Shown: positions 7,934 through 28,071, counted from the first letter of the stretch. The stretch is DNA of 64,000 bases from Lepidodermella squamata (GCA_047495785.1 JBLDXI010000009.1:124001-188000), one strand, 5' to 3'. Made by a program: numbers and translations. The notes: generated by a model from the letters alone, not told the origin.

Positions 7934-8976
7934 ATGGCATCAGAGAGGACGGCTCAAGAAAGTGAAAATGACAAAACCAAAAGTCAGGATGACGGCGATG
8001 CTGATTTGGAAGCTATCCTAGACAGTAAGTAGTCGCAGATATTACAATTACATAGAATGTTATACAGAAAAGAGTTTATTCAAGATCACACTTGAAAAAC
8101 ACTAGCCAAATTGCAGAGCTGAAAGTTTAACATAATAAATCCTAATTTAATTGAAACCAGGTGCATATGAAGACTTGAAGAAGGTAGAGAGTTCGAAAAA
8201 CGACCCGCCGCCGCCTCCACCGCCTAAGGCTGAACCTTCGAAGCAGCAAGCTAAAGCAGCCCCTTCCGCCCAATTCAACGAAAACAACTTGGACGAGTTT
8301 TTATCGACGATGGAAACTGAATTTCGGCGGCTCATGAGCAACCCCGAAGATCCAGCCGCATTGGCTGATATCGAAAAGTTGACCCGGGAGCTTGAGAAAT
8401 CGGCCCGTGAAGATGGCGCAGCAGGTGGTGGCGAGTTGCCGGATTTTGCCAAGCTATTCGGCTCAAACCCAGAAGCCTTTTTGGCGAATATGGCCGCAAC
8501 GGCTGGGGATCCATCAACGGCTAGTAGCGAAGGCCAGGCTGGTGATCCATCAGCTGGCATCATGGGCGCGCTACTCTCGCAACTGCTCAGCCACGACCTG
8601 TTGTACCCTGCGATTGTGCAGTTGCGCGAGCGGTACCCAGCGTGGCTTGAAAGCAATAAATCATCGGCTGACTTCGATCGCTGCTCGCGCCAGTTCGAAG
8701 TCGTCAAGCGATTATGCGTGACTTACGAGCAGCAACAAGCTGCGGGCAAGGAATCGCCGGAAAACATCTCCACTATAATTACACTTGTTCAAGAGGTTTG
8801 CATTGACTCGACCTGAATGTATAAGCTAATTTTTGTTAACACAGCTTCAGGCATGCGGAGACCCGCCACCAGAACTACTCGAGTCAGATTTGCCGATTCT
8901 AGGCGGCACGGCTGAATCATCCGACCAGGCTGCGTCCAATGGCGATTCTGGCGAACAAGAATGCAAAGTGCAATGA
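7934..8976 (+). CDS. PEX19: Peroxisomal biogenesis factor 19
   Basis: Three exons (introns 8025-8160 and ~8796-8844). N-terminal DADLEAILDSAYEDL (PEX3-binding-type helix), LLSHDLLYPAIVQLRERYPAWLESNK, LQACGDPPPEL, C-terminal CaaX box CKVQ-stop. Confidence 0.92.
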
Positions 8977-9442: not shown

Positions 9443-11948
9443 ATGCATCTTGACGAACTTCTGGAAAAGCTGAACCCTTACGGTTAGATACATGCTCATG
9501 TATGATTGGTTACAAAGTTATCATCCTGAACAATTTCAGGTAGTTATCAGCTCACGACATGGGTTATTTTGGCGATATTCAATTGCTTTCCACCAGCATG
9601 GCATTCCTTCTCGATGTAAGAAGATCCTACTTCAAACGGCTTTCATTTAAACTTTCTTTCATCATAGCGCCTTCATTGGCTACTACCCATCTGGCTTCAC
9701 ATGCTTTATCACCAATGATACCTACTTTAATTCTTCCAACGAGGTAATCTCTTTATCATAACCAACGCCGAAATCATCCCTAGAATTAAAGCCTACTCTG
9801 CCTTTTTTAACCAGCTCAATTACACCGTCTTAACAGCATTGGAAATCATGCCCAATGAAGCTGACAAGCAGCAGTGTTATCGCCCACGCGCGATGTCCGA
9901 CATGGACAAGGGCTATCAATACTATCTGGAAGCAAATAGAACCGGGGATGCGATGATTGTCAAAGAGCAGTGCCCATTCGGTACCATGGTTTACGCAGAT
10001 AGCGACCCAATCACATCTTCAATAGTAACAGAGGTCTGCAAAAATGTTGCGAATGGTGAAATTTAATAACGCTTTTCCGACTCAAAGTTTAATCTAGTCT
10101 GCGATCGCGAAATAATTTTTGTGTTGGTAAGTGCTGTCGAAGGGGCTGGAGGTAAAACTGTTTGAACCTGTTTTGGCGATATCAACAAAATGTGATATAG
10201 AAATCATCGGCTGCGTAATTTTCGGCTGGCTTTCCGATTACATGGGTCGCAAATTGGCATACTTCATTGCAGCAGGTACGCTTTTCCTCGGTGGAATGGG
10301 CTGTACGCTGTCGGTACATTGGTCCCTACTCGGACTCTGCCGCTTGATCAGCGGCGCTGGCCTTATCGGCATGAACAATGTTGGGTTCATCTTCGCGTCA
10401 GAAATGTTCCCACCCAAGCAGCGTACCATTCTCGCAACGTTACACGAACTTGTTTGGGGAATGTAAGTTAAGTGCATGAACGTATAATTATTTAACTGAA
10501 AACGTCCTTATTTTTTCAGAGCCGTCGTCTCGTTAGCAGGAATAGGATATTTCGTGCGTGACTGGCGAAACTTGAGCCTGACGTTAACAATTCCGATCAT
10601 TGGCCTTGTCCCGTTCTGGGGGTAGGTATCGGCCATTTCTCTGATTTTTCTTGTTTTAGTCTTCCCAACTCGAGAATATACTGATCTCAGACTTGTTCCT
10701 AGGTTGATCCAGGAATCGCTTCACTGGCTGTTGTGTAACGAAGCGGCTCCGGTTAGGCGCCGTCGTCGTCGCTCCGGAAACGCGCCGGCTGGTGACAACC
10801 TCGACGAGGCGTGCCGAATCGTTAAATGGGTAGCTAACTACAACCAGGTGACCGTGACCGAGGCTGATGTAGCTTCGACTTTGTTTCACAATTCGGCTCG
10901 CTCGGGTGTCCGGCCGAACACTCCCACTGGCCATAATCGAAGTAACGGCCAAAACCAGCAGACAGGAATTCGACACTGGCCTGTATACCGGCTAGTTGCG
11001 ACACCGCGCATGCGCTACATTTCGATATCAGTGACGTTACTTTGGTTTGCTAACAGCTTGGCCTATTACGGCTTGCAGTATTCGGCGCAATTACTACGCG
11101 CCGATTTTTACATGTCTTACTTCGCACTGGCCGTCGTTGAGCTGCCGTCAACTTTCGTCGTTCTACTTGTCATGCCTAAGCAAGTCTTGAAATATTATGA
11201 TCATCTGAACTGCTGGTTAACTCATCTCATTTTAAAAAAAAGGATCGGCAGAAAATGGACAATATTCGGATTCCACGTTCTTGCCGGCGTTTGCTGTGCA
11301 GTGGTTCCTTTCATCCCCAGTAATTATTAGGCGATTTTAGGCTTCATCTCACTTTAGTGAATTTTCAGTTGAATATTCCGACATTTCCGTGGCGACAGCT
11401 ATATTGGGAAAATTTGCAGTCTGCTCTTCGTTTACAGGTAAGTTTCGCAGGTGAGATCATACCAGCGGGTTCTATAAACTTCTTCATTCCGCAGCGATGT
11501 ACGTTTTTGCAGTTGAGCTATTTCCTACCGAAATAAGGTTTGATATTACGCTACAAATATCCAATTTCATAGATAATTTTCTACAAAACAGAGGATTCGG
11601 CTTTGGATTCTGCTCGCTACTTGGCCGCATCGGCCTTGTGGTGGCACCGTTCGTCAACTGGCTCGGCGTTGGTGGTGATGAGACAGCGTCTATTGTTAGA
11701 ATGATGCTTTACGGTTTGGTTTTAATTTTGACGGCTGTAACTATATTTTGGCTTCCCGAAACAAACAACTGCCCCTTGGCTGACACTATAGAGGTTATTT
11801 CAAACTTTTTCTCTATCAACTCGGATGAGTCCAAATTGTTTATACTTGACAGCAAACGGAGAATTTTGACGATTACTGCGCCGCCTCGAGAGCAAGAGGT
11901 GTCGTCTCCTTATTATCGACAGTTCACGACGAAACAAACAGACTCTAA
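9443..11948 (+). CDS. SLC22-like organic ion transporter (MFS), paralog 1
   Basis: MHLDELLEKLNPYG, EFNLVCDR, GWLSDYMGRK, SEMFP, ESLHWL, NSLAYYGL, VELFPTEIRG, LPETNNCPLADTIE; multi-exon with short introns. Confidence 0.88.
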
Positions 11949-12728
11949 AGAAATGAACTGATTACTTTTTAAAATTTGACAATTTTCCAGCTTGAAGTAA
12001 AGTCAACTCAAAAGCAGGTTAAAAAATGGTCATAACTATGCCTTACGTTGAGATTAGACATAAACTGGGGTAAACAGGAAACAGAGAATTTTACTCTCAG
12101 TTTGTTTTGCGATTCTTGGTTTAGCCTTATCTGCCGCTCCCATACGCTGACCTGGATTGATGTCAGGCGGCGTCAGTTTACTTATATGAAAGTGTGATGA
12201 AAATATGTCGATGGTATGGAATTTGAATGAAAAAATCAAATTATTCGAAAGACACCTGTGTAGCATAGCACAGTATCTAAAGCTGAAAAAAGATAAAATC
12301 AGCATATCGCATATTTCGAATGTTCAATGTCCCAAAATATTACGGGTGGACAGTGTCAAATGCAACCGTTGAATAATAGTTGCTGTCTATATGTTTATCT
12401 CGCGCTCTCATGTGGCGGGTGCGATAAACACATGAGAGACTAGGTACCTATCTAACGGTGTTACTAGAATCCTTAACTCACATCAAAACAGCTCTCCGCT
12501 TTGAAGATAATGGCGGTCAGATGATAAGACCGGTAGACGGTAAGAGAGGACAGCTCTCGTAATATTGCGTACTTTCCCGTCTCGAAACCAGCTTGTTGTC
12601 AATTATCCAACCAGGGACTTTGAACCTGATTATATCGAAATAGAGACGGCGATTTGAGCTGGGTGTTAGAATCCGGCTCTTCTGCGTATAGATTATCCCT
12701 TTCAAACTAATGATCTGCGCGTATCAAC

Positions 12729-15168
12729 ATGCATCTTGACAATCTTCTCGATCATCTCAATCCGTACGGTCCTTTCCAGGTAATAGCAAAAAGTGGATGC
12801 TTTGACACGTGATTTCAACTCTTGATCCCTAATATGTATCTCAGATAATCACATGGTTTGTGTTGTCAATTTTCACTTGCTTTCCACCGGCATGGCATCA
12901 ATTTGCGATAACATTTACGGCTTTCCGCCCGACTGAATTCAACTGCGCAGGTGGCCTCAATGGCTCGGCACTGCTCCAATCAGACAACTCCATCCACCGG
13001 TTGTCACCAATCGCCGGCCAACAGTGCCATTTCACTCGAGAACACTATTCAAGCAACTCGAGTGATGCGCAGTTGCTATCCGCTTCCAATGAGACATGCT
13101 CAGACAGCGGATGGTGGTACTCGGAAAATGACCCGGTTGACACTAGTCTAATAAAGCAGTGGGACTTGGTGTGCCACCGCGAGTACTTGTACGAGATCAT
13201 TAATACGGCTGAAGGAACTGGTGAGGTCATCGGCTGCATAGTCTTCGGCTACATTGCTGATAGGTAAACATGTTTTTTTTCAGCTGAGCAATACAAAATT
13301 GAAAAGGTGGTCCAATCAAGATGATCGATTACTTATCGTTGTTTCCTATAGGTTTGGACGAAAGGTAGGATTTTTCGGTTCGGCAGCTGCGTTATTCGCA
13401 AGCGGTCTGCTTTGCGCCTTCGCACCGATCCCCGCTCTCGCAGTGATAGCTCGGTTTGTGATCGGCATGGCTTTGACTGGCATGAATAATATTGGATTCT
13501 TAATGAACGCGGAACTATTCACACCAAACGTAATACAGCGTCGAATTTTATGATTAATTGCCAAGTTTGTACTAAAATTTCAGGCAAGGACCTTGTTTTC
13601 AACCGGCGGAGAGCTCATGTGGGCTTTGTAAGTTTTACATAGGCCTGAATCAAATTGTTTGCTAATTTTGTTGTGATTTACTGATAGAGCTGTCGTCTCA
13701 CTGGCTGGCATCGGCTATGGAATTCGCGATGCCATGTGGCTTGTGATTGCTATAACGCTTCCACTTGTTCTCATCACGCCCTTCTGGTGGTTTTTAAACG
13801 AGTCGATCCACTGGAACCTGTCGAAAGGCCGCATTGACAGTGTGAGGCATTCTCTGAAACGCATCGCTCGATTCAACAAGGTGACACTCGATGAAGAGCT
13901 GGTACAGCGCATTCTTGAGGAAGACGTCGAGCATGAGCGGCAAACGATCAAAAGCCAGCGATCCGTGACTAGTTCGAAACGGCCGAGTAAGGATGCATCG
14001 GTAGTGCATGACGCCAGTAGGACTGCTTCGATCACCTTGGCAGTAGCACCGCCGCCTTTCTCTTCCTCGCCATTGTCATCGCGCTCTTCGTCATCGTCGA
14101 CACTAGACGAGGCGAGCGGTGGAGTTCTCGACCTGTTTCGCACCCCGAAATTGCGGCTGATCACAATATTCCTAACGCTGCTGTGGTTCGCCAACACTAT
14201 GTGCTACTACGGCCTGCAACTAGCTGCGCAAGACATCGATGGGGTCGATTTTTACCTGTCTTTTTTCATTCTCGCTGTGGTTGAGGTGCCTTCTATTTTC
14301 GTCATGATCCCATCTATGCATTGGTATGATGAATTTAATTTCTAAATTTCTTTTAATTGATTATGGTACCGATTCAAACTGACAGGTTCGGCAGACGATG
14401 GGCTATAATTATTTATCAAATCTTGGGCGGTATTTCAATAGCGGCCGTTTCTTTCATACCGTCAGGTTTGTTCACAATTGATCCCACGAACCTTATACCT
14501 ACGATTTGTTCATCTTTTAACCAGGCCACGAAGTATTGACAATCAGCATTGCGGCATTTGGCAAATTTGCGGTCTGCTGCTCATTCAGTATGAAAACTAA
14601 CCTTCAATTTGCGAAACTTAAATGTATCGAATTCTTTCATTCACTCTTTAGCGGCTCTATATGTTTACGCTGTTGAACTTTTCCCAACTGTGCTGCGCGG
14701 AACAGGCTTCGGTGTTATCTCTGTTATAGGACGCGTCGGCATGATTGTGGCACCGCTGGTCAACAGCCTTGGATATGGCGAGGCGTAAGTTCAATTTTGT
14801 TTCAAGATGCACCCCATTTAAAAAGGAACAACGTCTTGCTTCATAGGGGATCTTCTGCACCCTGGCTTCGAAACATAATCTACGCGGCGAGTATGTTTAT
14901 AACTGGATTTTTGACGGTTAGTTTCAACGATTTCCCAACTTGAATAATATGCCTTATGCCTGTACTCGACACAGCTTCCACTGCCAGAAACCAACCATAA
15001 CCCATTAGCTGATACTATTGCGGTAAATACATACCATTTTATCTAGTTGTGGATATCATCTCGTTATTGTTTGTTTCACAGGAAATGGAAAACTATGCGG
15101 AATATTGCCGAGACTATCACCATGCAGCTGAGTTGAAGAAGCCCACTAAATCCGACGCTGAAAACTAG
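12729..15168 (+). CDS. SLC22-like organic ion transporter, paralog 2
   Basis: MHLDNLLDHLNPYGPFQ, QWDLVC, GYIADRFGRK, AELFTP, ESIHW, NTMCYYGL, VELFPTVLRG, LPETNHNPLADTI; intron positions shared with paralogs 1 and 3. Confidence 0.9.
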
Positions 15169-16003
15169 AGTGTTTAGAGCTAAACTAATTAAAAATGTGA
15201 TTAATTTCTGCACCAATTCAATAGCTGAATATTTGTTCTAATACCTGTAATAAACTTGCACTTGAAACTTTATGCCTTTCTATAATTGACATGGACAGCA
15301 ACGGTAAAAGGCAAAAGGAAAAAAAAACTGCATGAAAACTGCAGGTCACACGCAATGTTAAGCGAAATCAACTAATGTCCTTGCATTACGGGTTATACAA
15401 AACACAATTAACATATTGTCGAATAAGAGTTTATGAGAGTTTTCCCTTGATGTTAACAGCCTTTCTGTCCGAATAGGCTAGGCAATATTTATGCGGTGGT
15501 ATATTGATCCTATCACCTCCCTTAAAAATGTTAACAAAGTGAATATAGCGAGGAAGGAAGATGAAGAAGGCCATGCGGTGAAAGGGCAGCGAGAAAAAAT
15601 AACAGAATCCGTAAACAAGTGAACGACTTTAAACCATGAATAACCTATAACCTCATTTCAAATCCCATCTTCTGTACGTACATTTTCATTCACTTTTTGC
15701 AGTAATTACTTTCTCAACTAAATGGACACGATCATATGAGTTTACGACAAATACTACGAACGTTGTAGGTATAGGAGCATTTTTGTACGCAATTTTCGAG
15801 CAGAGCAGATTCACTGGCTTTTTACCGCAACGTTCAATAAGCTTCGAAAAGCATAACGTCATATCGTCGTGAGAGGCCGATCCTTATCACAACTCTCGTT
15901 ACCGAAGCCCGTCCTTATCAGCCACAGCTATGAACAGCTCTATATGTTAATAGATATTCATCGTTTATAAGCAGCACGGCCAACTAAATATCTACTTTCT
16001 ACT

Positions 16004-17889
16004 ATGGTTTCAGAAGTCTTTAAATACGTTATTCGGGAATGCCGTCGGAGAACATTTGACGCACGCCGGCTGACCCGTGAACTGCAAACAATGCCCGAAC
16101 AACACTACGAACAACAGTTCAACAATGATTTCGCAGAACGCGTTGTTCGTGCTCGAACATCATTCGACGCGTACCATTTGTTTTGCGACCTTTGGTTGAA
16201 GTTGAGCAATGAAACTATCGTTTGGGTGATTGTCACCGTCGAGCGTTATGACAATACGTTATTTGCTAGCTTCATAGCTCGGAATTTGTGGCAAGTTATG
16301 AAATCCCCTGAGAACTCCAACATGGCGGTCACTGCTAAGCAAGAAATGCGAGAAATACTAGATCAGCCGCGCAATCAATGTAGAACGGTATAACAGCCAC
16401 TCCTGTTTTCAATTAACTATTCTATTCCCTCCACTTGGAACTGCAGTTACGTGAAATGATGGAAAATGATCCACTACCTGACAGGTATTCCATCTTTTGC
16501 AGTTTCATCACTTTTCCTAACTCCATTTTTTTTAAATTTTCCTTTGATCAACACAGGCCTCATGCCGCAGGTAGGTCTTGGACTGCGTTCTAATGAACTA
16601 TTTGTTATTGATTTTGCACCGTTAGAGCCCACACTAACCGAACTACTACCTCAAAGTAGCCTCGCCGAGTGAGTTCTTGCCTTAAATCATCCTCGACTTT
16701 GTTACATTTCTCTTGGTCGCACCAGGCCTAGGGCTAACGAATCTGCTGTGGTTATCGACGGTATCGAATTTTAATTATGAATTCGAGGCTTGATTTTAAT
16801 ACGATGACTTTCAGCGTTGGGAAGTGTTCTCGGAACTCTACCCCAATCAGGTCCAGCCACTGAACAACCTTTAGGAATGATTGGAAGGTATCATCTTTGA
16901 GTTTTTATAAGCATCTGAAAAATAGTAATTTTTGAATCCCATGTTTAGCAATTCCTTTCAACATGCTGATCTTCCAGTTGCTCCAGTTGCTCCAGTTGCA
17001 GAGTCATCCATGGGTATATAATTTTGAAAGCCCATCCTTTAGTTCCTAGTTAGTAAGGTTCACGGCAATAGGTCACGGCAATGAACGGAATGGTCTTTTC
17101 GCGTCGTAGCGATATATTCCAGTTTCTAATTCTGATTCTGTTTCACAACAGTTAGCATTAGGTTAGTTCTCGGCGCCTCACCTCAGAGGTCGTAAAATCT
17201 ACTAGTTTATCCGGTTTAGATTTAATATATCGCAGAAGCGCAGTATGAGAATTATTGACAATACTTGTGGGCAGCCGGTTCCAAGCTGCGCGCCCACGCT
17301 TTGTAAAGCTGAACTGAAAGCTCGGATGTTCAAATCGTTTCATCACAACAGCATGAGCTGGTAAACGGCGATTTGAAGATATTTCGAAGAATGTCGAAAA
17401 GCTAGCATCCACACAGCCTAGGTACATTTTGTGGCATAGCGTAAGGTCAGGTTGAAAGCGTCTAATTTCAAGAGGACACAGTCTTTCATAATACGAGGCA
17501 ACTTCAATCAATGAATAGTAGTCACTTCTATACAACAGGGGTTTTGTGAACCGGGCTTGAACTAATCTCAGTTCCTATTTTCTAATACAGAAGGTGTATT
17601 ACCAAATCAGCCACTCGCTATTTTACCTGATGGCGAGGGAATGTCGGCACCTTCAGTAACTGCTTTGGTTGATTCCAAGTATGTTTTACTAGTTTAACTA
17701 TGTGACTATTATCATTATTATTGTAATTTCAATACCTCAGTGACTCAATGCAACGCAATTTAGGAGCCCAGAATTACGTGGCTGATTTGCAAAGGAATAA
17801 TACTCAGAGTAAGTTCTGCCGACCGCTTTAACTGTTGATCAGCTGAATTGTTTTTTGTTTCAGACTTGAGCGACTTGAGCCCAAGATAA
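16004..17889 (+). CDS. CARD-like domain plus Pro-rich micro-exon linker, no kinase (truncated paralog of 20403-23285)
   Basis: Ten exons (16004-16387, 16447-16484, 16557-16570, 16626-16668, ~16726/16732-16760, 16815-16887, 16949-17013, 17591-17678, 17741-17808, 17864-17889) collinear with the downstream copy; internal exon-length differences are multiples of 3; TAA at 17887-17889; AATAAA at 17991. Confidence 0.7.
17121..17563 (-). mobile_element. 5'-truncated non-LTR retrotransposon fragment (CR1/L2/Jockey-type ORF2 C-terminus) in an intron
   Basis: ORF 17158-17535 has SYYERL...LEIRR..DL..CHK..LG...F......R..H......FSFTKR...AWNRLP, typical of LINE ORF2 ends; (AGAATC)-like tail near 17125-17140; absent from the homologous intron of the paralog (21427-21583). 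Confidence 0.8.
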
Positions 17890-18187
17890 TGCTTCTTAAA
17901 GGCAGCAACCTGGCGATGAGCAGACATTGACGCTGCTAAAGCAGTGATTATCTCCTCATAGCGTGTAAAAACACGAAATCGAAGCACTGAAATAAATTTT
18001 AAAGTGACTAATTTCGAACTTTTTTCTCAGGATCAACTCTCAAACCGAATTCAAATCCACCGAAATTAAAATTACAGGTCCGAAATCTCCAAAACCGAAA
18101 ATTAGTAGATATGTATACAGTACCTGTAATAAAATTGCACTTGAAACATGTATGCCCGTCTATATCGACGTCGACGGCAACGGTAAG

Positions 18188-18688
18188 GCAGATGCGACCG
18201 GGTAACAGCACTTTACCACTCCGCGCCCGGGCCTCTTTAAAACTTGCCCGTATGCGACATTTACTGTAAATTTAACAAATTCGAAAGAATCACGCTTCAC
18301 CGCACACTGGCAGGCCAAGGTGTTGGCCCGAGCACGGCGGAGAACAATGGGAACCAGCACTATTGTTAAGCACTCGCGCACGCCTTACCTGGGCCGCCGG
18401 CTTCGGGCCGGGACTTGATACAGTTATCAAGTCGAGCGTTGGTTGTAGGATGGCCCAAGCCCGGCGACCCAAGCCCGACGGCTCGATTCCAGAGGCCCGA
18501 GCCCGGCGGCCCGAGTTAGTGCTGGTTCCCATTGTTCATCTCCGCCGTGCTCGGGCCAACACCTTGGCCGGCCCGTGTGCGGTGAAGCGCGATTCTTTCG
18601 AATTTGTTAAATTTACAGCAAATGTCACATACGGGCAAGTTTTAAAGAGGCCCGAGTGCGGAGCGGCAAATCATTCTTACCCGTCTGC
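18188..18688. mobile_element. Fold-back/MITE-like element with ~170-bp inverted arms
   Basis: 18188-18362 is the near-perfect reverse complement of 18517-18688 (e.g. AAAACTTGCCCGTATG / CATACGGGCAAGTTTT; GGGAACCAGCACTA / TAGTGCTGGTTCCC); nested GC-rich IR ~18390-18408 vs ~18494-18512. No transposase. Confidence 0.8.
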
Positions 18689-18787
18689 GTACGGGCCGGC
18701 CCGAACGCGTACGGGCAGAATTCGGACTCGGGCCCCAACAAGAACATTTCAAATCCTATCATCTGATGAAATTTAGCGCTACCTATA

Positions 18788-19209
18788 CCGTAGTTACCGA
18801 AATACTAACCCGGGCTTATACAAAAATGATACCTCGAAAAATGGGGAAAAGTAGGCTTCTATTCAACACTAGGCTTCTATTTGAGATAGGCCTATGCAAC
18901 GGAGACCTGACGTTACTTTCCGTCTTTCAATCTCAAAACTCATCAAAGTATTCATTATTAGTTATTAGCTAGGTCGTCTAATAGCTGGAAATCAAGACTA
19001 ATAAGGAAAGCTTTCACTAAAATCATCATAAACAGCAGATTATTAAATAGCAGATTAAACAGCGCATTTTTCGTTTTTAAATACCGTTCAGCGCAGCAGA
19101 GCACACGTGCCGTAGTAGCATAGGACTATGCATCGACGAATTTCAATTTACCTAGGCTTCTAATCGAGACAGGCTTCTAAACGAGTGGGGGCTTATATTT
19201 CGGTAACTA
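18788..19209. mobile_element. Tc1/pogo-type MITE
   Basis: Left end TA|CCGTAGTTACCGAAATA; right end TATTTCGGTAACTA followed by (TA)n (14-bp TIR); internal AGGCTTCTA repeats near both ends. Confidence 0.7.
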
Positions 19210-20402
19210 TATATATATATATATATATATTTTATTGTTATGAACAACAACAGCCCGCTGTTATTTATAAATAACAGTTGCCATAACGACACTGGAGTAA
19301 CTAGAATTTCTTTGGATATGTGTTTTAAGGTTTAGGATTATTTCATTTAACAGGTTCGTAGAGGAAAGAATTAATCATCTTGCTGCTGCGATAGGCTATT
19401 TCCGAAAGGATTCGATGGATGGTCGGTTTGTCGATTCCTAAATTGCGCAATGCGTCCACTGCCGGCTTGCAAATCGAGGCGCGAGATCCGAAATATAACC
19501 CCAGGACGGTTATCTTTTTCAGCTTCCTTGTTTTGTTGATATCTTCAATTCAAAAGTTTATTTCCGATAAATTTCATCAATCCTTTTATTCAAAAAAACA
19601 GGTTATTAAACATATCATCTGAGTGCAAACTTTCATTCAATTTTGGCGCAGTAAGTACTTTCTCAACTGAATGAACATGCTCATATGAATTAACCACTAA
19701 TACTACAAAAACGTTGTAGGTATACATAATAATGGCACGAGTTTCGCTTTTTTTACGCATTTTTAGACTCACGATGAGCATAATAGATTCACACTGGCTT
19801 TTTCCACTACGTGCAAGTGTCGAAAAGCAGCCGATTTAACACCCAAAAAACTTGGATTCATATCGTCGTGAGAGGCCGATCCTTATCGCAACTCTTATTG
19901 TTAATGCAGGCCGTCCTTATCACAGCCACGGCAGTGAAACTTAATCAGCTCTATATGTTATAATAGAAATTCATTTATTCGTTTAATCCAGGGGCTCTGT
20001 CCATCTTTCGAAGATACCACCCCTCGCCTACAATTACCGGACGATGTTGAAGCTACATATATATCCTCCTACCTTAACTACCTAACTACCCTTTGACTGG
20101 GTCTTTGACCATAATTAATAATAAATGTAAATAAAATATTAATCTGATAATATCTGCACGGAGTGTGACGTAGTGTGAGTATGCAATATAAATCGAACGA
20201 CGCACGCATATGCCTCTCGACGCTTACGTTATTCACTATATCGCCAAAGAAATATGATCATATTTGTGGTGCGCCCAAAGCTCAACCGTGGCCGGTGCTT
20301 TTTTATTACTTTTGAAACGATAAAACAAACAGCTCCTTCTTCTTCCTCTGTTAATAGAAATTCATCGTTTAAGCTCGGCCATCTAAATACCTACTTCCCT
20401 CT

Positions 20403-23285
20403 ATGGTTTTTGGTGGCTTTGAGCGCGTTATTCGGGAATGCCGTCGGAGAACATTTGACGCGCGCCGGCTGACCCGTGAACTGCAAACAATGCCCGAACA
20501 CTACGACCAACAGTTCAACAATGATTTTGTAGAACGCGTTGTTCGCGCTCGTACATCATTCGAGGCCTTGCATACTTTCTGTGACCTTTGGGCACGGTTG
20601 AGCAATGACACTATCATTTGGGTGATCGTCACCGTCGAGCGCTATGACCCTAGCTTTGCTAGCTTCATAGTTCGGAATTTGTGGCAAGTTCTAAAATCTC
20701 CTGAGAACTCCGACATGGCGGTCGCTGCTAAGCGAGAAATGCGAGAAATACTAAGTCAGCCGCGCAATCAATGTAGAACGGTATAACAGTCACTACTTTA
20801 AACTGTAACTATCCCATTCTATTTCCTCCATTTGGAACTACAGCTGCGTAACATGATGGAAACTGATCCACTGCCTGATAGGTATTCTATTTTTTCTAGT
20901 TTCATCACTTTTCCTAACTCGATTCTTTCAATTACCCCTTGATCAACACAGTCCTCTTGCCGCCGCGGGTAGGTCTTGGGCTGTGTTCTCTTGGAGTATT
21001 TTTAATATTTTGCACCGTTAGAGCCAGCCGCGCCCATATTAACCGAAATCCTAAATGAAAGAAACCGCCCAGGGTGAATTCTTGCCTTAAACCATCCTCG
21101 AATTCTCAAATAATACATTTCTCTTGGGCTTAGGGCTAACGAATCTGCTGTGGTTATGGACGGTATCGAATTAATTCTGAATACGAGGAGGCTTGATTTT
21201 AATACGATAATTTTTAGAGTTGGACGGTGTTCTTGGACTACCACCCCAATCAGGTCCTGGGCAACCATTAGAAATGATTGGAAGGTATTTTTTTTTATAA
21301 TTGTGTGTTATAAGCATATTCAAAGTTAGTAATTTTTAAACCCCATGTTTAGCGATTCCCTTCAACGTGTTGGTCCTCCAGTTGCTCCAGTTGCCCCAGT
21401 TGCTCCAGTTGCTCCACCATCAATGGGTATGTAATTTTGAGAGCGCATCCCCTAGTTAGTAAGGGCAAGTAAGGGTAAAATTGCGATAAAATCACGGTCT
21501 CAGCGACCTATTAGCATAAGTATATGCGGTCTTTTCGTGTCGTATCGATATACTCATGCTTTTTATCTCAGTTCCCATTACAGACCGTGTATTACCAAAT
21601 CAGCCGTTCGGTGTTTTACCTGATGGTGAGGGAATGTCGGCGCCTGCAATAGCTGCTTTGGCTGATTCCAAGTATGTTTTACTATTAGTTGTACTGTGAC
21701 TATCATCACCAATTGATTGTAACTCTAATACCACAGTGACTCAATGCAACGCGATTTAGGTGGCCAGAATTATTTGGCTGATTTGCGAAGAAATAATGCT
21801 CAGAGTAAGTTCTGCCGCCCGCCTCAGCCTCAGCCTGTTGATCAGCTGAATCGTTTTTGTTTCAGACTTGAGCGAGTTGATGATTGACAACCCGACCCAG
21901 AATGCTTTTTCAAGGCAACAACCTGGCGATGATCAACCTTCACCGACTGCCTCCTCTAATCAATCCCAACTTCACGCAGTGCAGCCACTCTCGGCCATGG
22001 CGAATCGCTTTAATGTCACAAACGAGTTAGGAAGTGGTAATTATTAGGGCCAGACGATTTGTTAACGTTTTTAAGTTTTGCAATTTCAAAACAAGGTGCA
22101 CAAGGCAGAGCCTTCATGGCGACCAGGCGAATTGATAACTCACAAGTCGTGCTCAAAGAAGTTCGCTTGCAAAAGATGAACAACGAGGCTGACCGCATTA
22201 GAGCTCGCCGAGAGGTATACATGCATTTATAGCATGGTAGAGTTATAGTTCATATGAGGTTATTTTCAGTCAAGGCTGCTCTCTAAACTAAGTCATCCTA
22301 ACATCATCGAAGTATTTACTGTATACCAAGGACCTAGTAAGTTATTGCAGATTTTCTGAAACCAACTGTCATCTATTTGATGTTTCAGGCCTCCTCTGCC
22401 TCGAATTGGAGTACTGCGCTGGCGGCGAGCTTTATCAGGCGATCAGATTGTACCGCCAAGCTGAGCCCCACGTTCAGTTGGACGAGCAACAACAGGTAAA
22501 TCATCCTTAGAATTATGAATAATATGGTAATATGACAACCTAATGAATATACCAACTATTTATGGGTTTTGAAAAAGATTGCGTTAACTGAAGTTTGAAT
22601 GAAATATTCTCATTTTAGATCAAACCTTGGATAAAACAACTGTCGGAGGCAACTAATTACTTGCATAGCAGAGGAATCGTTCATCGTGATATTAAACCTC
22701 ATGTAAAAATGGGAAAAGCGCGAAAATTGCTCTTATAAACCCCTTACCCACTTCCAGAATATTTTATTCAAAGATGCTGCACGGACGACGCTGAAGCTTA
22801 TCGATTTTGGAATGGCGAGGCAGTATGAAAGGTATTGAACTAACATATTTTGTTCATATAATTGTTTGCCATCCCAGGGACACAGCGACGAGTTTTTCTA
22901 CAACTGAATCACAAGGTTTGGTTGGAACCCTGCCTTACATGGCGCCGGAAGTATTCCAGAACGAAAGCGCTGAACTGGGCAACAATTACAAACGAGATGT
23001 TTGGGCTGTTGGAATTGTTCTCTACGAGCTAGCCATGCTGGACATCCCTTACAATAGTACAGACAAGTACGCCATCATCACTCAGATAATTAAGTAAGCT
23101 TCATCAGCAAATTATAATACCCACAATTAAACATGACCGTTGCCCGCAACAGCTATAGATTGCAACCCTTGAGCGAACTGCGCACCAGCCCATTGTTACG
23201 CAACTTGTGCGGGTTCATGCTAACGAGGAACCCCAACGATCGGCCCTCAATGTCGGATGCTTTGCAACACGAGTGGTTTCATTAA
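20403..23285 (+). CDS. CARD-like domain / Pro-rich linker / NEK-like Ser/Thr kinase
   Basis: Exons 20403-20780, 20844-20881, 20952-20968, 21022-21073, 21134-21162, 21218-21284, 21353-21426, 21584-21671, 21737-21804, 21866-22036 splice in frame into a kinase with LGSGAQG, VVLKEV, RRESRLLSKLSHPNII, EYCAGGEL, HRDIKPHN, DFG, GTLPYMAPE, DVWAVGIVLYEL, DRPS; stop 23283-23285. Confidence 0.85.
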
Positions 23286-24083: not shown

Positions 24084-25612
24084 ATGATTGCTGTCGCTCT
24101 AGCGTTATCCGTTGTCGGATTTCTGTTTTATTCATCAAGGCGATTTCTTGGCGACAAGCGGTACAACCTTCCGCCCGGTCCAACGCCGGTACCATGGCTC
24201 GGCAACTTGAATTTGCTGATGGCTCTGCGAGGAAAGAAAGCGCTGTGGGAGTTCTACCGCGACATGGCCAATAAGTACGGACCAATCTTCACGTTTTACA
24301 TGGGCCCCATCCGAATGGTTGGTCTAAACGATGCAAAGGTAATCCACGAAGCGTTGGTTGAGAAGGGCAAAACCTTCAGTTGGCGCATCGAGCCGAGACT
24401 GCCGGGCTACGAGAAGATGCCGAATGCGATAGCGTTCGCTAGCCACGACGTTTGGCGAAAGAACAGGCGCTTCGCTGCTAAAGCAATGCGAGATTTCGGT
24501 AAGTTGAGCTGCAATATTCTTGATCTTTAAATAATAATTGAATTTTCCCATAAGGCATGGGCAAGGAACCTATGGCTGTCAAGATCCACGAAGAGGTGGA
24601 AGCCTTGTTCGAGGAGCTGCGCCAATTGAAGAAGCCTTTCAACCCATCGACCCTGCTGTCAAACGTTGTTTCGAATGTTGTTTGCTCGCTTGTTCTTGGC
24701 AAGCGTCTTCACTACGACGATCCTAATTTCAAGGAAGTAATGAATTTTGTACGGCCGTTGACTGAACACTCAACCGTGGAGAGTACTTCATTTCTGCTGT
24801 TTCCCGCTCTGAAACACTTCAAGACACCGGGGCAAGTCACGGCAATGCAGGAATGCGTAGATTTTGTGACGAAATTGGTCGCGCAAGCCATTGAAGAACA
24901 TCGTGCAGATTACAACAGAGATAACATTCGCGACTTTCCTGATATGTACTTACAATCGCATTCAGAACCCGATGGCGAACCCATCGACATGAAAGATTTC
25001 GGCACAATTATGATGGAGCTATTCTTGGCTGGTACCGAAACTACTGCAACTGCTCTGACGTGGGCGCTATTCTATTTGACCAAGAACCCCGAACTTCAAA
25101 GGAAGTGTCAGGAAGAGATCGACAGTGTCATTGATACTGATCGCTTGCCCACGTTACAAGATAGGCAAAAACTGGTGTACGTTGACGCCGTTATGCATGA
25201 AGTTCTGCGACACGCTGTCATCGGCCCGATGGCATTGTTCCACTCCAATTTGGACGAGCCCGCCACCGTCGCCGGCTACGACATCCCGCCAAATACAATG
25301 GTCATGTATAATATCGGCACTCAGCATTTCGACGAGACGTATTGGGAATCTGCCACCGAATTCAAGCCAGAGCGATGGATCAGTCCTGACAACAAATTAC
25401 TTTCCCATTCGTCGCATTTCATGCCGTTCGGCCTTGGACCCCGCGTTTGCGTCGGTGAGAGCCTAGCTCGCATGGAGTTTTTCATCTTTCTCACCGCTAT
25501 GCTACATCGCTTCGATTTCAAAATGACCACGCCCGACGTCAAGTACGAAGATGGTTTCTGCGGCCTCGTTCACAAAGCCCCATATTACGAAATTACAGCT
25601 GAAAGTCGTTAA
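24084..25612 (+). CDS. Cytochrome P450, clan 2 (CYP2-like)
   Basis: N-terminal anchor, PPGPTPVPWLGN, WRKNR, one intron 24499-24554, AGTETT, EVLR, PERW, heme motif FGLGPRVCVG. Confidence 0.95.
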
Positions 25613-25851: not shown

Positions 25852-28071
25852 TTATGATGATTTGCCAACTTGAGCAATCTTGTCTCTTTTCTCAGCATCA
25901 TGATATTCCTTGCAGAACTTGGCGTAATGTTCAGCTTGCTACAATTTCAAGAAAGCAACCAAGTCAGAGAATACATGGAAACGTTCGTTAACTTGCCTCT
26001 ATGGTCGCAGCTAGAGGCTGCTTGTTAGTTTCCGGCAGTGGAAGCTGAACAATTCAGAATGATTTTTTCTGCTCAAAGTTGCGGTGTAACATAAAACATA
26101 CCGTCATGAAACCAGTGCCAATCAACGCAACACCATAAATGACCATACGCGCCCATGAGGGGAAGACGGATGATCTTAGGAAATCATATTTGAGTTATCA
26201 ATCGGTCAGAAAAAAAAGACTATTTACGCTTCGCCGTAACCGATACTGTTGATAAAAGGAGCTACGATTATTCCAGCGCGACCAATAATTGAAACTGTAC
26301 CAAAACCGGTACCCCTAATGCATGTTGGGAAGAGTTCAGCAGCGTACACATAAACACCCGCTGATAAAATGCCGTAGAAATAGACAATAAAATTGAACTA
26401 TAAATAAGTTCTTACTGAATGATGCACTCGCTGCAAATTTGCCGAAAGCCGCAATGCAAAAGGATAGGATTTTCATGTCGTCGGGAATGAACGGAACGAC
26501 GGCGCAGGAGACGCCAGCCAGGATTTGGAAAATAATGATAGACCATCTTCGACCAATACTACAACCTTGGCATAAGCGATTTTAATTTACAAATGAGAAA
26601 AAACTACGTACAAAATCAGTGCTGGAACGATGACAAATGTTGAGGGAATTTCAACGGCTGCCAGAATCAAGAAGCTGACATAAAAGTCAACGCCCTCCGA
26701 CAACTGAGCTGCAAGCATCAATCCGTAGTAGCACATGGTGTTGGCGAACCATATGATGGTGATTAGAATCGTAGTCAATCTCAGCCTCGGCGTGCGAACC
26801 AGATCGAGCAAGCCGTAAGTCTTAGCCGTCTTAGGCTGGGCAGGTGAGCCATCAGCTAGCAATGCATCGCCCACACTGGGCTCATACTCAGTCAACTCAG
26901 CTCTCTCCGTTTGCAGAGCGCTCAGCAAGAGTTCTTCATCCAACGGCTTTTTGTTGAACTTCGCGATGCGTTTCAACGTTGCCGAAGCCTCTTTCAGTCT
27001 ACCTGTAGACAGCTGCCACTGAAGGGATTCGACGATAAACCTGAATATGATTATAAGTAAGGCTTTTCACCCGCGAGGCTTTAAAAAATATTACCACCAC
27101 GTAGGAATCATCAGCAATATCGGTAAAGTGCAAGCTAGCATAAAGCTGAACTCATCCCGAAAAATGTAGCCCACTCCAGCGAGAGTTGTTACGGAACTGT
27201 TGGAAGAAATGTCCACATTTGAGACCGAAATGTTATTCATAAGAAAATTCGATTTGAAACTTGCCACGCCCAAAACATTTGGGATCCCGTAGAAAAGATC
27301 GTCCTCAGATTGGGAGCGAAAAGTTCGGTGTTCATCAGAAATCCATTGCTCATTACACCGGTAAGTCCGATGCCAATGAAGAAGCGGGCTATCAAAGTTA
27401 CGACGTAATGAGGTGCGAAGGCGCATACGATTCCACTAACAAAGAGAAGAACGGCTGATGAGAAGAAAGTCGGCTTCCGACCAAATCTATCTGCAACAAT
27501 GCCCATGAGCATGCACCCGACAACTTCACCTAAAATTATGAAAACAGACATGCTGTAGTGTTGATAGCTAAAGGAATCTAACCTAATCCTTCGGATGAAC
27601 TGATTATAGCTAGTAGCTGCTCGCGTGCGCACACAAGGCCAAATTGTGTAACAAGACTACTTTTCACAGGGTCTTCATCCGTATACCACATCGACTCGAT
27701 TGGGCAGGTTTCATTGGTGATGGAGATTAATTGGGCTTCTTCAATCACTGAACCAGAGTAGCGGTAGGTGGACGCCAGGCATGGGTGGTCTGCAATTGAT
27801 TGTCGAACGATGGTAAAATTCGATAGAACCCCGCTGGAATCCGCTTCCGTCACGGTTGACGTACTGTTGCCACAAGAGTACTTTGAAGGGAAATAGCCAG
27901 TGAACACAATAGCGAACTGATGGAAAGACGGCGGGAGAGTGGCAAACACCGAAACCAGCACATAGTTGATAAACTGAATTCAAATTTTGTTATGCCTGTA
28001 ATTATGGGATAGGAATCGAATCGAACCTGGTAAGGACCAGTAAGTTGCTCTAAAAAATTATCCAGCTTCAT
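25852..28071 (-). CDS. SLC22-like organic ion transporter, paralog 3
   Basis: MKLDNFLEQLTGPYQ, QFGLVC, GIVADRFGRK, TELFAP, NTMCYYGL, AELFPT, LPETNKQPLAATIE; convergent with the P450. Confidence 0.9.

Follow-up and report, generated by a model that had tools for sequence, protein, structure and literature searches.

What a paralog that stops just before the kinase domain might be doing, if anything, is the question raised by a kinase gene of Lepidodermella squamata and by the shorter copy that precedes it. Both lie in a window of 64,000 nucleotides (nt; GCA_047495785.1 JBLDXI010000009.1:124001-188000), which is the whole stretch of DNA analysed here and from whose first letter all positions are counted; genes and their parts are on the plus strand unless otherwise stated. 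An original prediction had read the longer copy (copy B, 20403-23285) as a CARD-like domain joined to a NEK-like kinase and the shorter one (copy A, 16004-17889) as its frame-preserved, kinase-less paralog, the two making up a candidate sensor and decoy system of death-fold signalling. Judged from its sequence and from spliced contigs of a probable RNA run, copy A is a paralog without a kinase that is under selection and expressed, rather than a relic in decay, and we lean, by a small margin over even chances, towards a lineage-restricted kinase pair in which this tandem 5' duplicate was kept and expressed and would act as a domain-only competitor or regulator of copy B. The death-fold part of the prediction found no support. 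Two public runs contain the stretch and are used throughout: X2, which is DNA-like and holds 76% of the sampled words, and X1, which holds 23% and is presumed to be RNA.

A kinase gene and its shortened copy

The gene model of copy B, rebuilt from the window, has 17 exons with GT-AG at every intron and a spliced open reading frame (ORF) of 593 amino acids (aa). Exon 1 (20403-20780) encodes an orphan, predicted all-helical N-domain of 126 aa; X1 contigs are identical to the window over 20368-20662. Exons 2-10 (20844-22036; individually 20844-20881, 20952-20968, 21022-21073, 21134-21162, 21218-21284, 21353-21426, 21584-21671, 21737-21804 and 21866-22036) encode a Pro-rich linker and include a micro-exon of 17 nt (20952-20968). 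The first eight of these, exons 2-9, measure 38, 17, 52, 29, 67, 74, 88 and 68 nt and give a Pro/Ala/Gly-rich sequence with a (PVA)n run, and exon 10 spans the end of the linker and the Gly-loop of the kinase. The linker, of about 190 aa, is probably disordered with a few conserved motifs. The Ser/Thr protein kinase domain, its catalytic motifs intact, follows in exons 11-17 (22096-23285; individually 22096-22214, 22270-22336, 22389-22495, 22619-22702, 22758-22831, 22878-23093 and 23153-23285) and ends with TAA at 23283-23285. The predicted succession of a helical domain of about 125 aa, a Pro-rich linker made of micro-exons and an intact kinase was thus recovered in a clean reading frame.

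The motifs found in the spliced ORF of copy B are GSGAQG, VLK, an alphaC Glu (RRE), HRDIKPHN, DFG, APE and DRPS, and exon 16 alone matches Pfam Pkinase (PF00069) with an E-value of 7.6e-10, better than it matches PK_Tyr_Ser-Thr. On these motifs and this match, we read the product as a member of the eukaryotic protein kinase superfamily that appears to be active. To assess family membership, single exons were compared with the sequences of solved structures. Exon 16, which holds the activation segment, best matched MAP3K12 (1.2e-7), NEK7 (2.2e-7) and MKK6 (4e-7), all within a factor of four in E-value; the best matches were PLK2, CaMKII and Aurora for exon 17 and GCN2, CK2 and CaMK for exon 14, and exon 11 matched none of these sequences. 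NEK7 is therefore among the top matches of exon 16, as a NEK-like kinase would have it, but it ties there with MAP3K12 and MKK6, and the other exons favour other families. A NEK-like kinase is plausible, and the HRDIKPxNI, DFGxAR and RNPxDRPS motifs of copy B, by eye, resemble those of NEKs. A kinase of the IRAK/Pelle or RIPK type was rejected, since no IRAK or RIPK chain was found among the best 60 matches of any kinase exon with matches (14, 16 and 17) and Pkinase scored above PK_Tyr_Ser-Thr.

Copy A has 10 exons, again with GT-AG at every intron and with the frame kept throughout, and an ORF of 275 aa that ends with TAA at 17887-17889. Its exon 1 (16004-16387) encodes an orphan N-domain of 128 aa, likewise predicted to be all-helical, with 83% aa identity to that of copy B (21 of about 126 positions differ), and exons 2-10 (16447-17889; individually 16447-16484, 16557-16570, 16626-16668, 16732-16760, 16815-16887, 16949-17013, 17591-17678, 17741-17808 and 17864-17889) encode the Pro-rich linker, with a micro-exon of 14 nt (16557-16570). 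Ten matching exons with internal length differences in multiples of three had been claimed, and the pairs proved exact: in copies A and B, respectively, 14/17, 43/52, 73/67 and 65/74 nt, together with 384/378 nt for exon 1. The linkers share the motifs LPDGEGMSAP and DSNDSMQR.LG.QNY.ADL.RNN.QNLS. The C-terminus of copy A is degenerate, as a difference of 11 nt and a TCA-to-TAA change create stops in two frames near the breakpoint. It does stop before the kinase, as predicted: beyond its TAA, and between the two copies, no kinase remnant was detected by tblastn (E<=50) or by blastn (word size 7). The AATAAA attributed to copy A is present at 17991, but it sits inside a polymorphic segment of 198 nt (17923-18120, plus strand) which begins a few bases from the breakpoint of A/B homology and is replaced in X1 and X2: an X2 contig has only 75 letters, all different, from 17922 to 18121, while 17922 is also where an X1 contig departs from the window. 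In those alleles, the 3' end of copy A therefore needs a different polyadenylation signal.

The homologous stretch is about 15684 to about 17925 in A and 19631 to about 21936 in B, some 2.2 kb at 80-85% identity. The duplicated unit therefore comprises exons 1-9, preceded by about 320 nt of upstream DNA and followed by the initial 60-70 nt of exon 10. The upstream region of copy A (15684-16003; promoter and 5' untranslated region, UTR) was duplicated along with the gene: 15684-15961 aligns with 19631-19974 at 69% identity and 15945-15997 with 20349-20396 at 83%. Its homologous counterpart in copy B (19631-20402) is interrupted at 19975-20348, where an insert of about 374 nt separates the two conserved blocks; one X2 allele has an extra insertion of 29 nt after 19984. 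At the other end, the last match pairs 17888-17919 with 21901-21932 (91%) and nothing aligns beyond it. The homology thus ends inside exon 10 (17890-17930, plus strand), in what may be a duplication or a deletion breakpoint and is part of the 3' UTR of copy A. A search of the window with copy B (tblastn) returned no copies of the family besides A and B. On the mapped limits of the homology and on both gene models, we conclude that copies A and B are a pair made by tandem duplication; copy A may have arisen by partial duplication, or the whole gene may have been duplicated and the 3' part of copy A lost afterwards. What it has in common with domain-only decoy paralogs is that it derives from a duplication, lies adjacent to its multi-domain parent and has lost the effector domain.

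Within the duplicated unit, intron 7 of copy A (17014-17590) measures 577 nt, against 157 nt in copy B, because it holds an insert of 443 nt. The insert belongs to a high-copy repeat: its depth in X2 is about 1700-1960, whereas that of the flanks is about 30-70. An antisense ORF of 125 aa within the insert (17158-17535) ends in ...AAWNRLPTSIV..., which we take to resemble the C-terminal tail of the ORF2 proteins of long interspersed nuclear elements (LINEs; a WN.LP-type motif), and the insert probably represents a fragment from the 3' end of a LINE that lies antisense to the gene. That splice sites survive around a LINE insertion holds as regards the preserved sites and the repeat insert of 443 nt, but the LINE label derives from this motif, and ORFs of the intron 7 insert and of the intergenic repeats had no match in Pfam.

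Maintenance and expression of copy A

Exons 1-9 of copy A carry no frameshift, premature stop or lost splice site in spite of a divergence of about 15%, a state that does not correspond to that of an unprocessed pseudogene. The six indels that separate the exons of A from those of B (3, 3, 3, 9, 6 and 9 nt) are without exception multiples of three, as compared with only 4 of 13 intron indels, and indel events per nt are about 3.7 times commoner in introns than in exons. A neutral-decay simulation of the A branch, with substitution and indel rates taken from introns and survival defined as an intact ORF and 18 splice dinucleotides, gave 0 survivors in 20,000 when the whole branch was neutral, 16 in 20,000 (8e-4) when half of it was, and 2.9% when a quarter was. 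For the greater part of its history, then, copy A has been maintained as a coding gene. Identity between the copies is 85.4% in exons and 83.7% in introns. The ratio of non-synonymous to synonymous substitution rates (dN/dS), a check that the original prediction had called for, was estimated pairwise between A and B by the Nei-Gojobori method (dS about 0.26) and amounts to 0.60 overall, 0.55 in the N-domain and 0.64 in the linker, with an overall non-synonymous deficit (Fisher p=0.011). When the outgroup sequence P0001, described below, is used to polarize changes in the N-domain, 6 fall on the A branch and 4 on the B branch, and the kinase-less copy is therefore not evolving faster than the kinase-bearing one.

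Transcription of both copies, which had also been put forward as a check, is indicated by spliced junctions in the probable RNA run, whose contigs skip introns at GT..AG in A and in B. In copy A, X1 contigs join exons 2-3-4, including the 14-nt exon 3, as well as exons 6-7, 8-9 and 9-10; the last of these joints links 17808 to 17864, with 59 nt on its shorter side and one other letter listed, at 17777. In copy B they join exons 2-3-4, including the 17-nt exon 3, exons 9-10 (in two contigs) and exons 11-12, and one contig starts at 20368, 35 nt before the ATG. Since exon 10, with the end of the linker and the Gly-loop, is spliced to exon 9, there is no need to postulate a kinase-only transcript from an ATG near 21998, although one may exist. 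The frame, the splice sites, the simulation and the X1 junctions, X1 being presumed RNA, all describe a coding gene that has been maintained and expressed, as a domain-only decoy would have to be. Selection on a truncated protein rather than decay, as originally proposed, is thus favoured by the in-frame indels, the retained splice sites, the simulation, the similar rates of the two branches and the spliced contigs.

One X1 contig is a mosaic, with A-like exons 7-8, of which exon 7 is six nt shorter but in frame, followed by B-like exons 9-10. Its exon-10 variants at 21910, 21912, 21933 and 21942 are also present in the X2 DNA, at about half depth, so that the contig stems from a third copy in the genome, or from a divergent allele, and not from a chimeric transcript. 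Read-through from A into B was discarded as the source of the mosaic by the same variants, found at 21910-21942 in the DNA run. A third copy or divergent allele suggests that there are more paralogs, or gene conversion among them.

An orphan helical N-domain

The N-domain had been assigned to the CARD/death fold from its pattern of helices, and it is here that our results depart from the original prediction. In Pfam, the N-domains of A and B match no family at E<=1, and CARD, Death, DED and PYRIN/PYD all fail. When 1.84 billion representatives were scanned in full with HMMER, a sole credible relative emerged, P0001 (E 3.6e-24, 49% identity); P0002, a weakly matching bacterial repeat protein whose context is GrpE/DnaK/FtsY, was dismissed as irrelevant. 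A word-index search with the N-domain and a scan of metagenome contigs with the family alignment both returned nothing, the family profile found only a syntaxin (E 1.4) among the sequences of solved structures, and a feature search of the protein atlas gave no recognition (best score 0.82, unrelated).

Structure prediction gave no significant fold match. AlphaFold2, run on an alignment of three sequences, produced low-confidence models with seven helices for both N-domains, with a predicted local distance difference test (pLDDT) of 45 and a predicted template modelling (TM) score of 0.29 for copy B, and of 55.7 and 0.41, respectively, for copy A. Neither model had a Foldseek match in the PDB better than E 2. 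With the poorer model (B), about ten death-fold chains appeared among the weak Foldseek rows (E 4-9, TM 0.2-0.39); with the better one (A), the death fold was in none of the best 50 Foldseek rows, the best 50 VIA rows or the atlas rows. The top Z of VIA-align against 48,161 chains was 5.4, within the noise for helical models, and all atlas fold rows had TM <0.5; Harmonin-homology domains (Z 4.2-5.0) and HDOD domains (TM <0.5), which also appear in the fold searches, are both within noise. The comparison with death folds by AlphaFold and Foldseek, which had been suggested as a check, thus gave no significant match, and neither Pfam, solved structures nor the atlas speaks for a CARD. A CARD-like N-domain is unsupported, although alignments as shallow as these could miss one. 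The models and the searches together make the N-domain an orphan, predicted all-alpha module that appears to be restricted to its lineage.

The relative P0001 is encoded at locus L001, on a public Logan contig, where the two final exons of a same-family kinase gene (1-300) are followed, head-to-tail and at a distance of about 400 nt, by an N-domain exon 1 (702-1085). These kinase exons are 39-41% identical to exons 16-17 of copy B and have an intron at the same position. As the 3' end of a kinase gene is followed by an N-domain exon, the family is tandemly arrayed in the relative too. Three residues, Cys13, His57 and Cys60 (numbered on copy B exon 1, 20403-20780), do not vary among the three N-domain sequences known; a metal site there is conceivable, although with only three sequences the conservation may mean nothing.

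The surroundings of the pair include Pex19 (8151-8813), several ORFs of 100-208 aa that belong to no Pfam family (10131-14345) and could form part of an uncharacterised gene, as its exons, ahead of copy A, a cytochrome P450 with two large exons (24084-25612) and, on the minus strand, an MFS/sugar transporter (27237-27961). Nothing in these neighbouring genes points to a death-fold pathway. The spacer between A and B consists mostly of high-copy repeats, with X2 depths in the thousands against about 36-70 for genes, and holds an inverted-repeat element (about 18193-18701) with opposite-strand joints in X2.

Possible roles and known parallels

Copy A, which duplicates ten exons and the region next to the promoter, has been kept as a 275-aa protein of N-domain and linker that shares the non-catalytic parts of copy B but presumably lacks its capacity for phosphorylation. 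Such a protein could compete for, or bridge to, the partners of the N-domain and of the linker motifs, whether a third protein or copy B itself, and might in this way modulate signalling by copy B, either as a dominant negative or as a scaffold, following the logic of CARD-only proteins and microProteins. Since copy A keeps 83% of the N-domain and the linker motifs, competition or scaffolding at the non-catalytic contacts of copy B is the most economical function to propose for it. The pair would then work like a domain-only decoy system, one in which membership of the death fold is unsupported.

Several observations weigh against this proposal. Constraint on copy A appears weak, given that exon identity barely exceeds intron identity and that dN/dS is about 0.55-0.64. 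The X1 evidence consists of contigs, which inform on junctions and not on level, strand or transcript ends, and the RNA status of that run is a guess. Some of the A-like contigs (exons 7-8) belong to the third, mosaic copy and not to A. The junction between exons 10 and 11 of copy B is absent among the X1 joints listed, which leaves one continuous mRNA, from the N-domain through the last kinase exon, short of strict proof. Finally, the modulator role is something we purely infer.

Other explanations have to be weighed on the same evidence. Copy A could be a relic without function, left by a partial duplication and still transcribed from a copied promoter; its ORF would then be open by chance or because B converted it in the past. 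Exons hardly more conserved than introns, a dN/dS of about 0.6, the degenerate end with its stops in two frames near the breakpoint, and mosaic contigs of A-like and B-like sequence that hint at exchange among copies would all fit with this, but neutral survival is nil for the whole branch and only 0.029 even for a quarter of it, exon indels are in frame in six of six cases as against 4 of 13 in introns, and the N-domain of A, with 6 changes to 4, is not faster than that of B. Besides, 80-85% identity gives no sign of recent conversion, and the A-like variant in X1 that is shorter by 6 nt is again in frame, so that we regard a relic as rather improbable. A function of its own, unrelated to copy B, for example as an adaptor in another pathway, with sub- or neo-functionalisation and no competition, is unlikely but deserves somewhat more credit. 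The block of promoter sequence copied for A, together with an upstream region of B broken by the insert of about 374 nt, means that regulation of the two may differ, and 21 of about 126 N-domain positions have diverged; on the other hand, the conserved linker motifs and 83% identity of the N-domains suggest shared partners.

That the N-domain is a divergent CARD or death fold, copy B a death-fold kinase with homotypic filament assembly and copy A a decoy of the CARD-only type, seems to us very improbable. An all-helical domain with seven predicted helices in about 120 aa, the echo of the IRAK/Pelle layout in the order of N-terminal interaction domain, Pro-rich linker and kinase, the ten or so death-fold chains at Foldseek E 4-9 with the poorer model, and the analogy with CARD-only proteins (PMC3775265) are the reasons to consider it. 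Yet CARD, Death, DED and PYD are missing from the Pfam matches at E<=1 and from the solved-structure and atlas matches, with the better model death folds are missing from the best 50 Foldseek rows, the best 50 VIA rows (best Z 5.4, noise) and the atlas rows, seven helices are predicted rather than six, and the kinase pieces never match IRAK or RIPK, with exon 16 preferring Pkinase to PK_Tyr_Ser-Thr. A broader version, in which the N-domain is a homotypic assembly module that has escaped detection, either a diverged death fold or a new helical fold, gathering the kinase into complexes that copy A caps or seeds, would amount to a sensor and decoy system independent of the vertebrate CARD-only proteins, and we hold it to be a long shot. 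A maintained, domain-only competitor or regulator of copy B remains the explanation towards which we lean.

If copy A does modulate copy B, the locus would show in compact form how, in nature and beyond vertebrates and plants, partial tandem duplication of a kinase gene can give rise to a domain-only regulator, and would provide a function for an orphan helical domain. Annotations of the locus should treat copies A and B alike as coding, including their micro-exons of 14 and 17 nt, and the case advises caution against inferring a 'CARD' from resemblance to a helix pattern.

Known systems close to this pair include the CARD-only proteins (COP/CARD16, INCA/CARD17 and ICEBERG/CARD18) and the PYD-only proteins. 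The primate CARD-only proteins adjoin CASP1 and act on caspase-1, and COPs have been described as non-enzymatic decoys, which sets a precedent for adjacent decoys derived from duplication (PMC3775265). Copy A is similarly a young, lineage-restricted, adjacent tandem duplicate that is expressed and keeps only the N-terminal part of a multi-domain enzyme gene. Unlike in the CARD-only proteins, its domain is not demonstrably a CARD or death fold, the parent enzyme is a kinase and not a caspase, and a long linker has been kept. The microProtein concept, in which domain-only paralogs titrate their multi-domain relatives (PMC5381583, PMC9638782), applies to copy A in that it derives from a larger protein and keeps the non-catalytic parts after loss of the effector domain, although its 275 aa place it above the usual size of <20 kDa (about 180 aa or less).

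As for the parent, copy B is similar in layout to IRAK/Pelle, in which a helical module at the N-terminus precedes a Pro/Ser-rich linker and the kinase. It differs from IRAK/Pelle and RIPK in having neither a match to a death-domain profile nor a kinase match to IRAK or RIPK, and, in contrast to TKL-type kinases, its C-lobe motifs DVWAVG..YEL, RNPNDRPS and HEWF look NEK/STE/CAMK-type. Its resemblance to NEKs lies in the motifs named above and in the activation-segment exon, for which NEK7 is among the best solved matches (E 2e-7), tied with MAP3K12 and MKK6.

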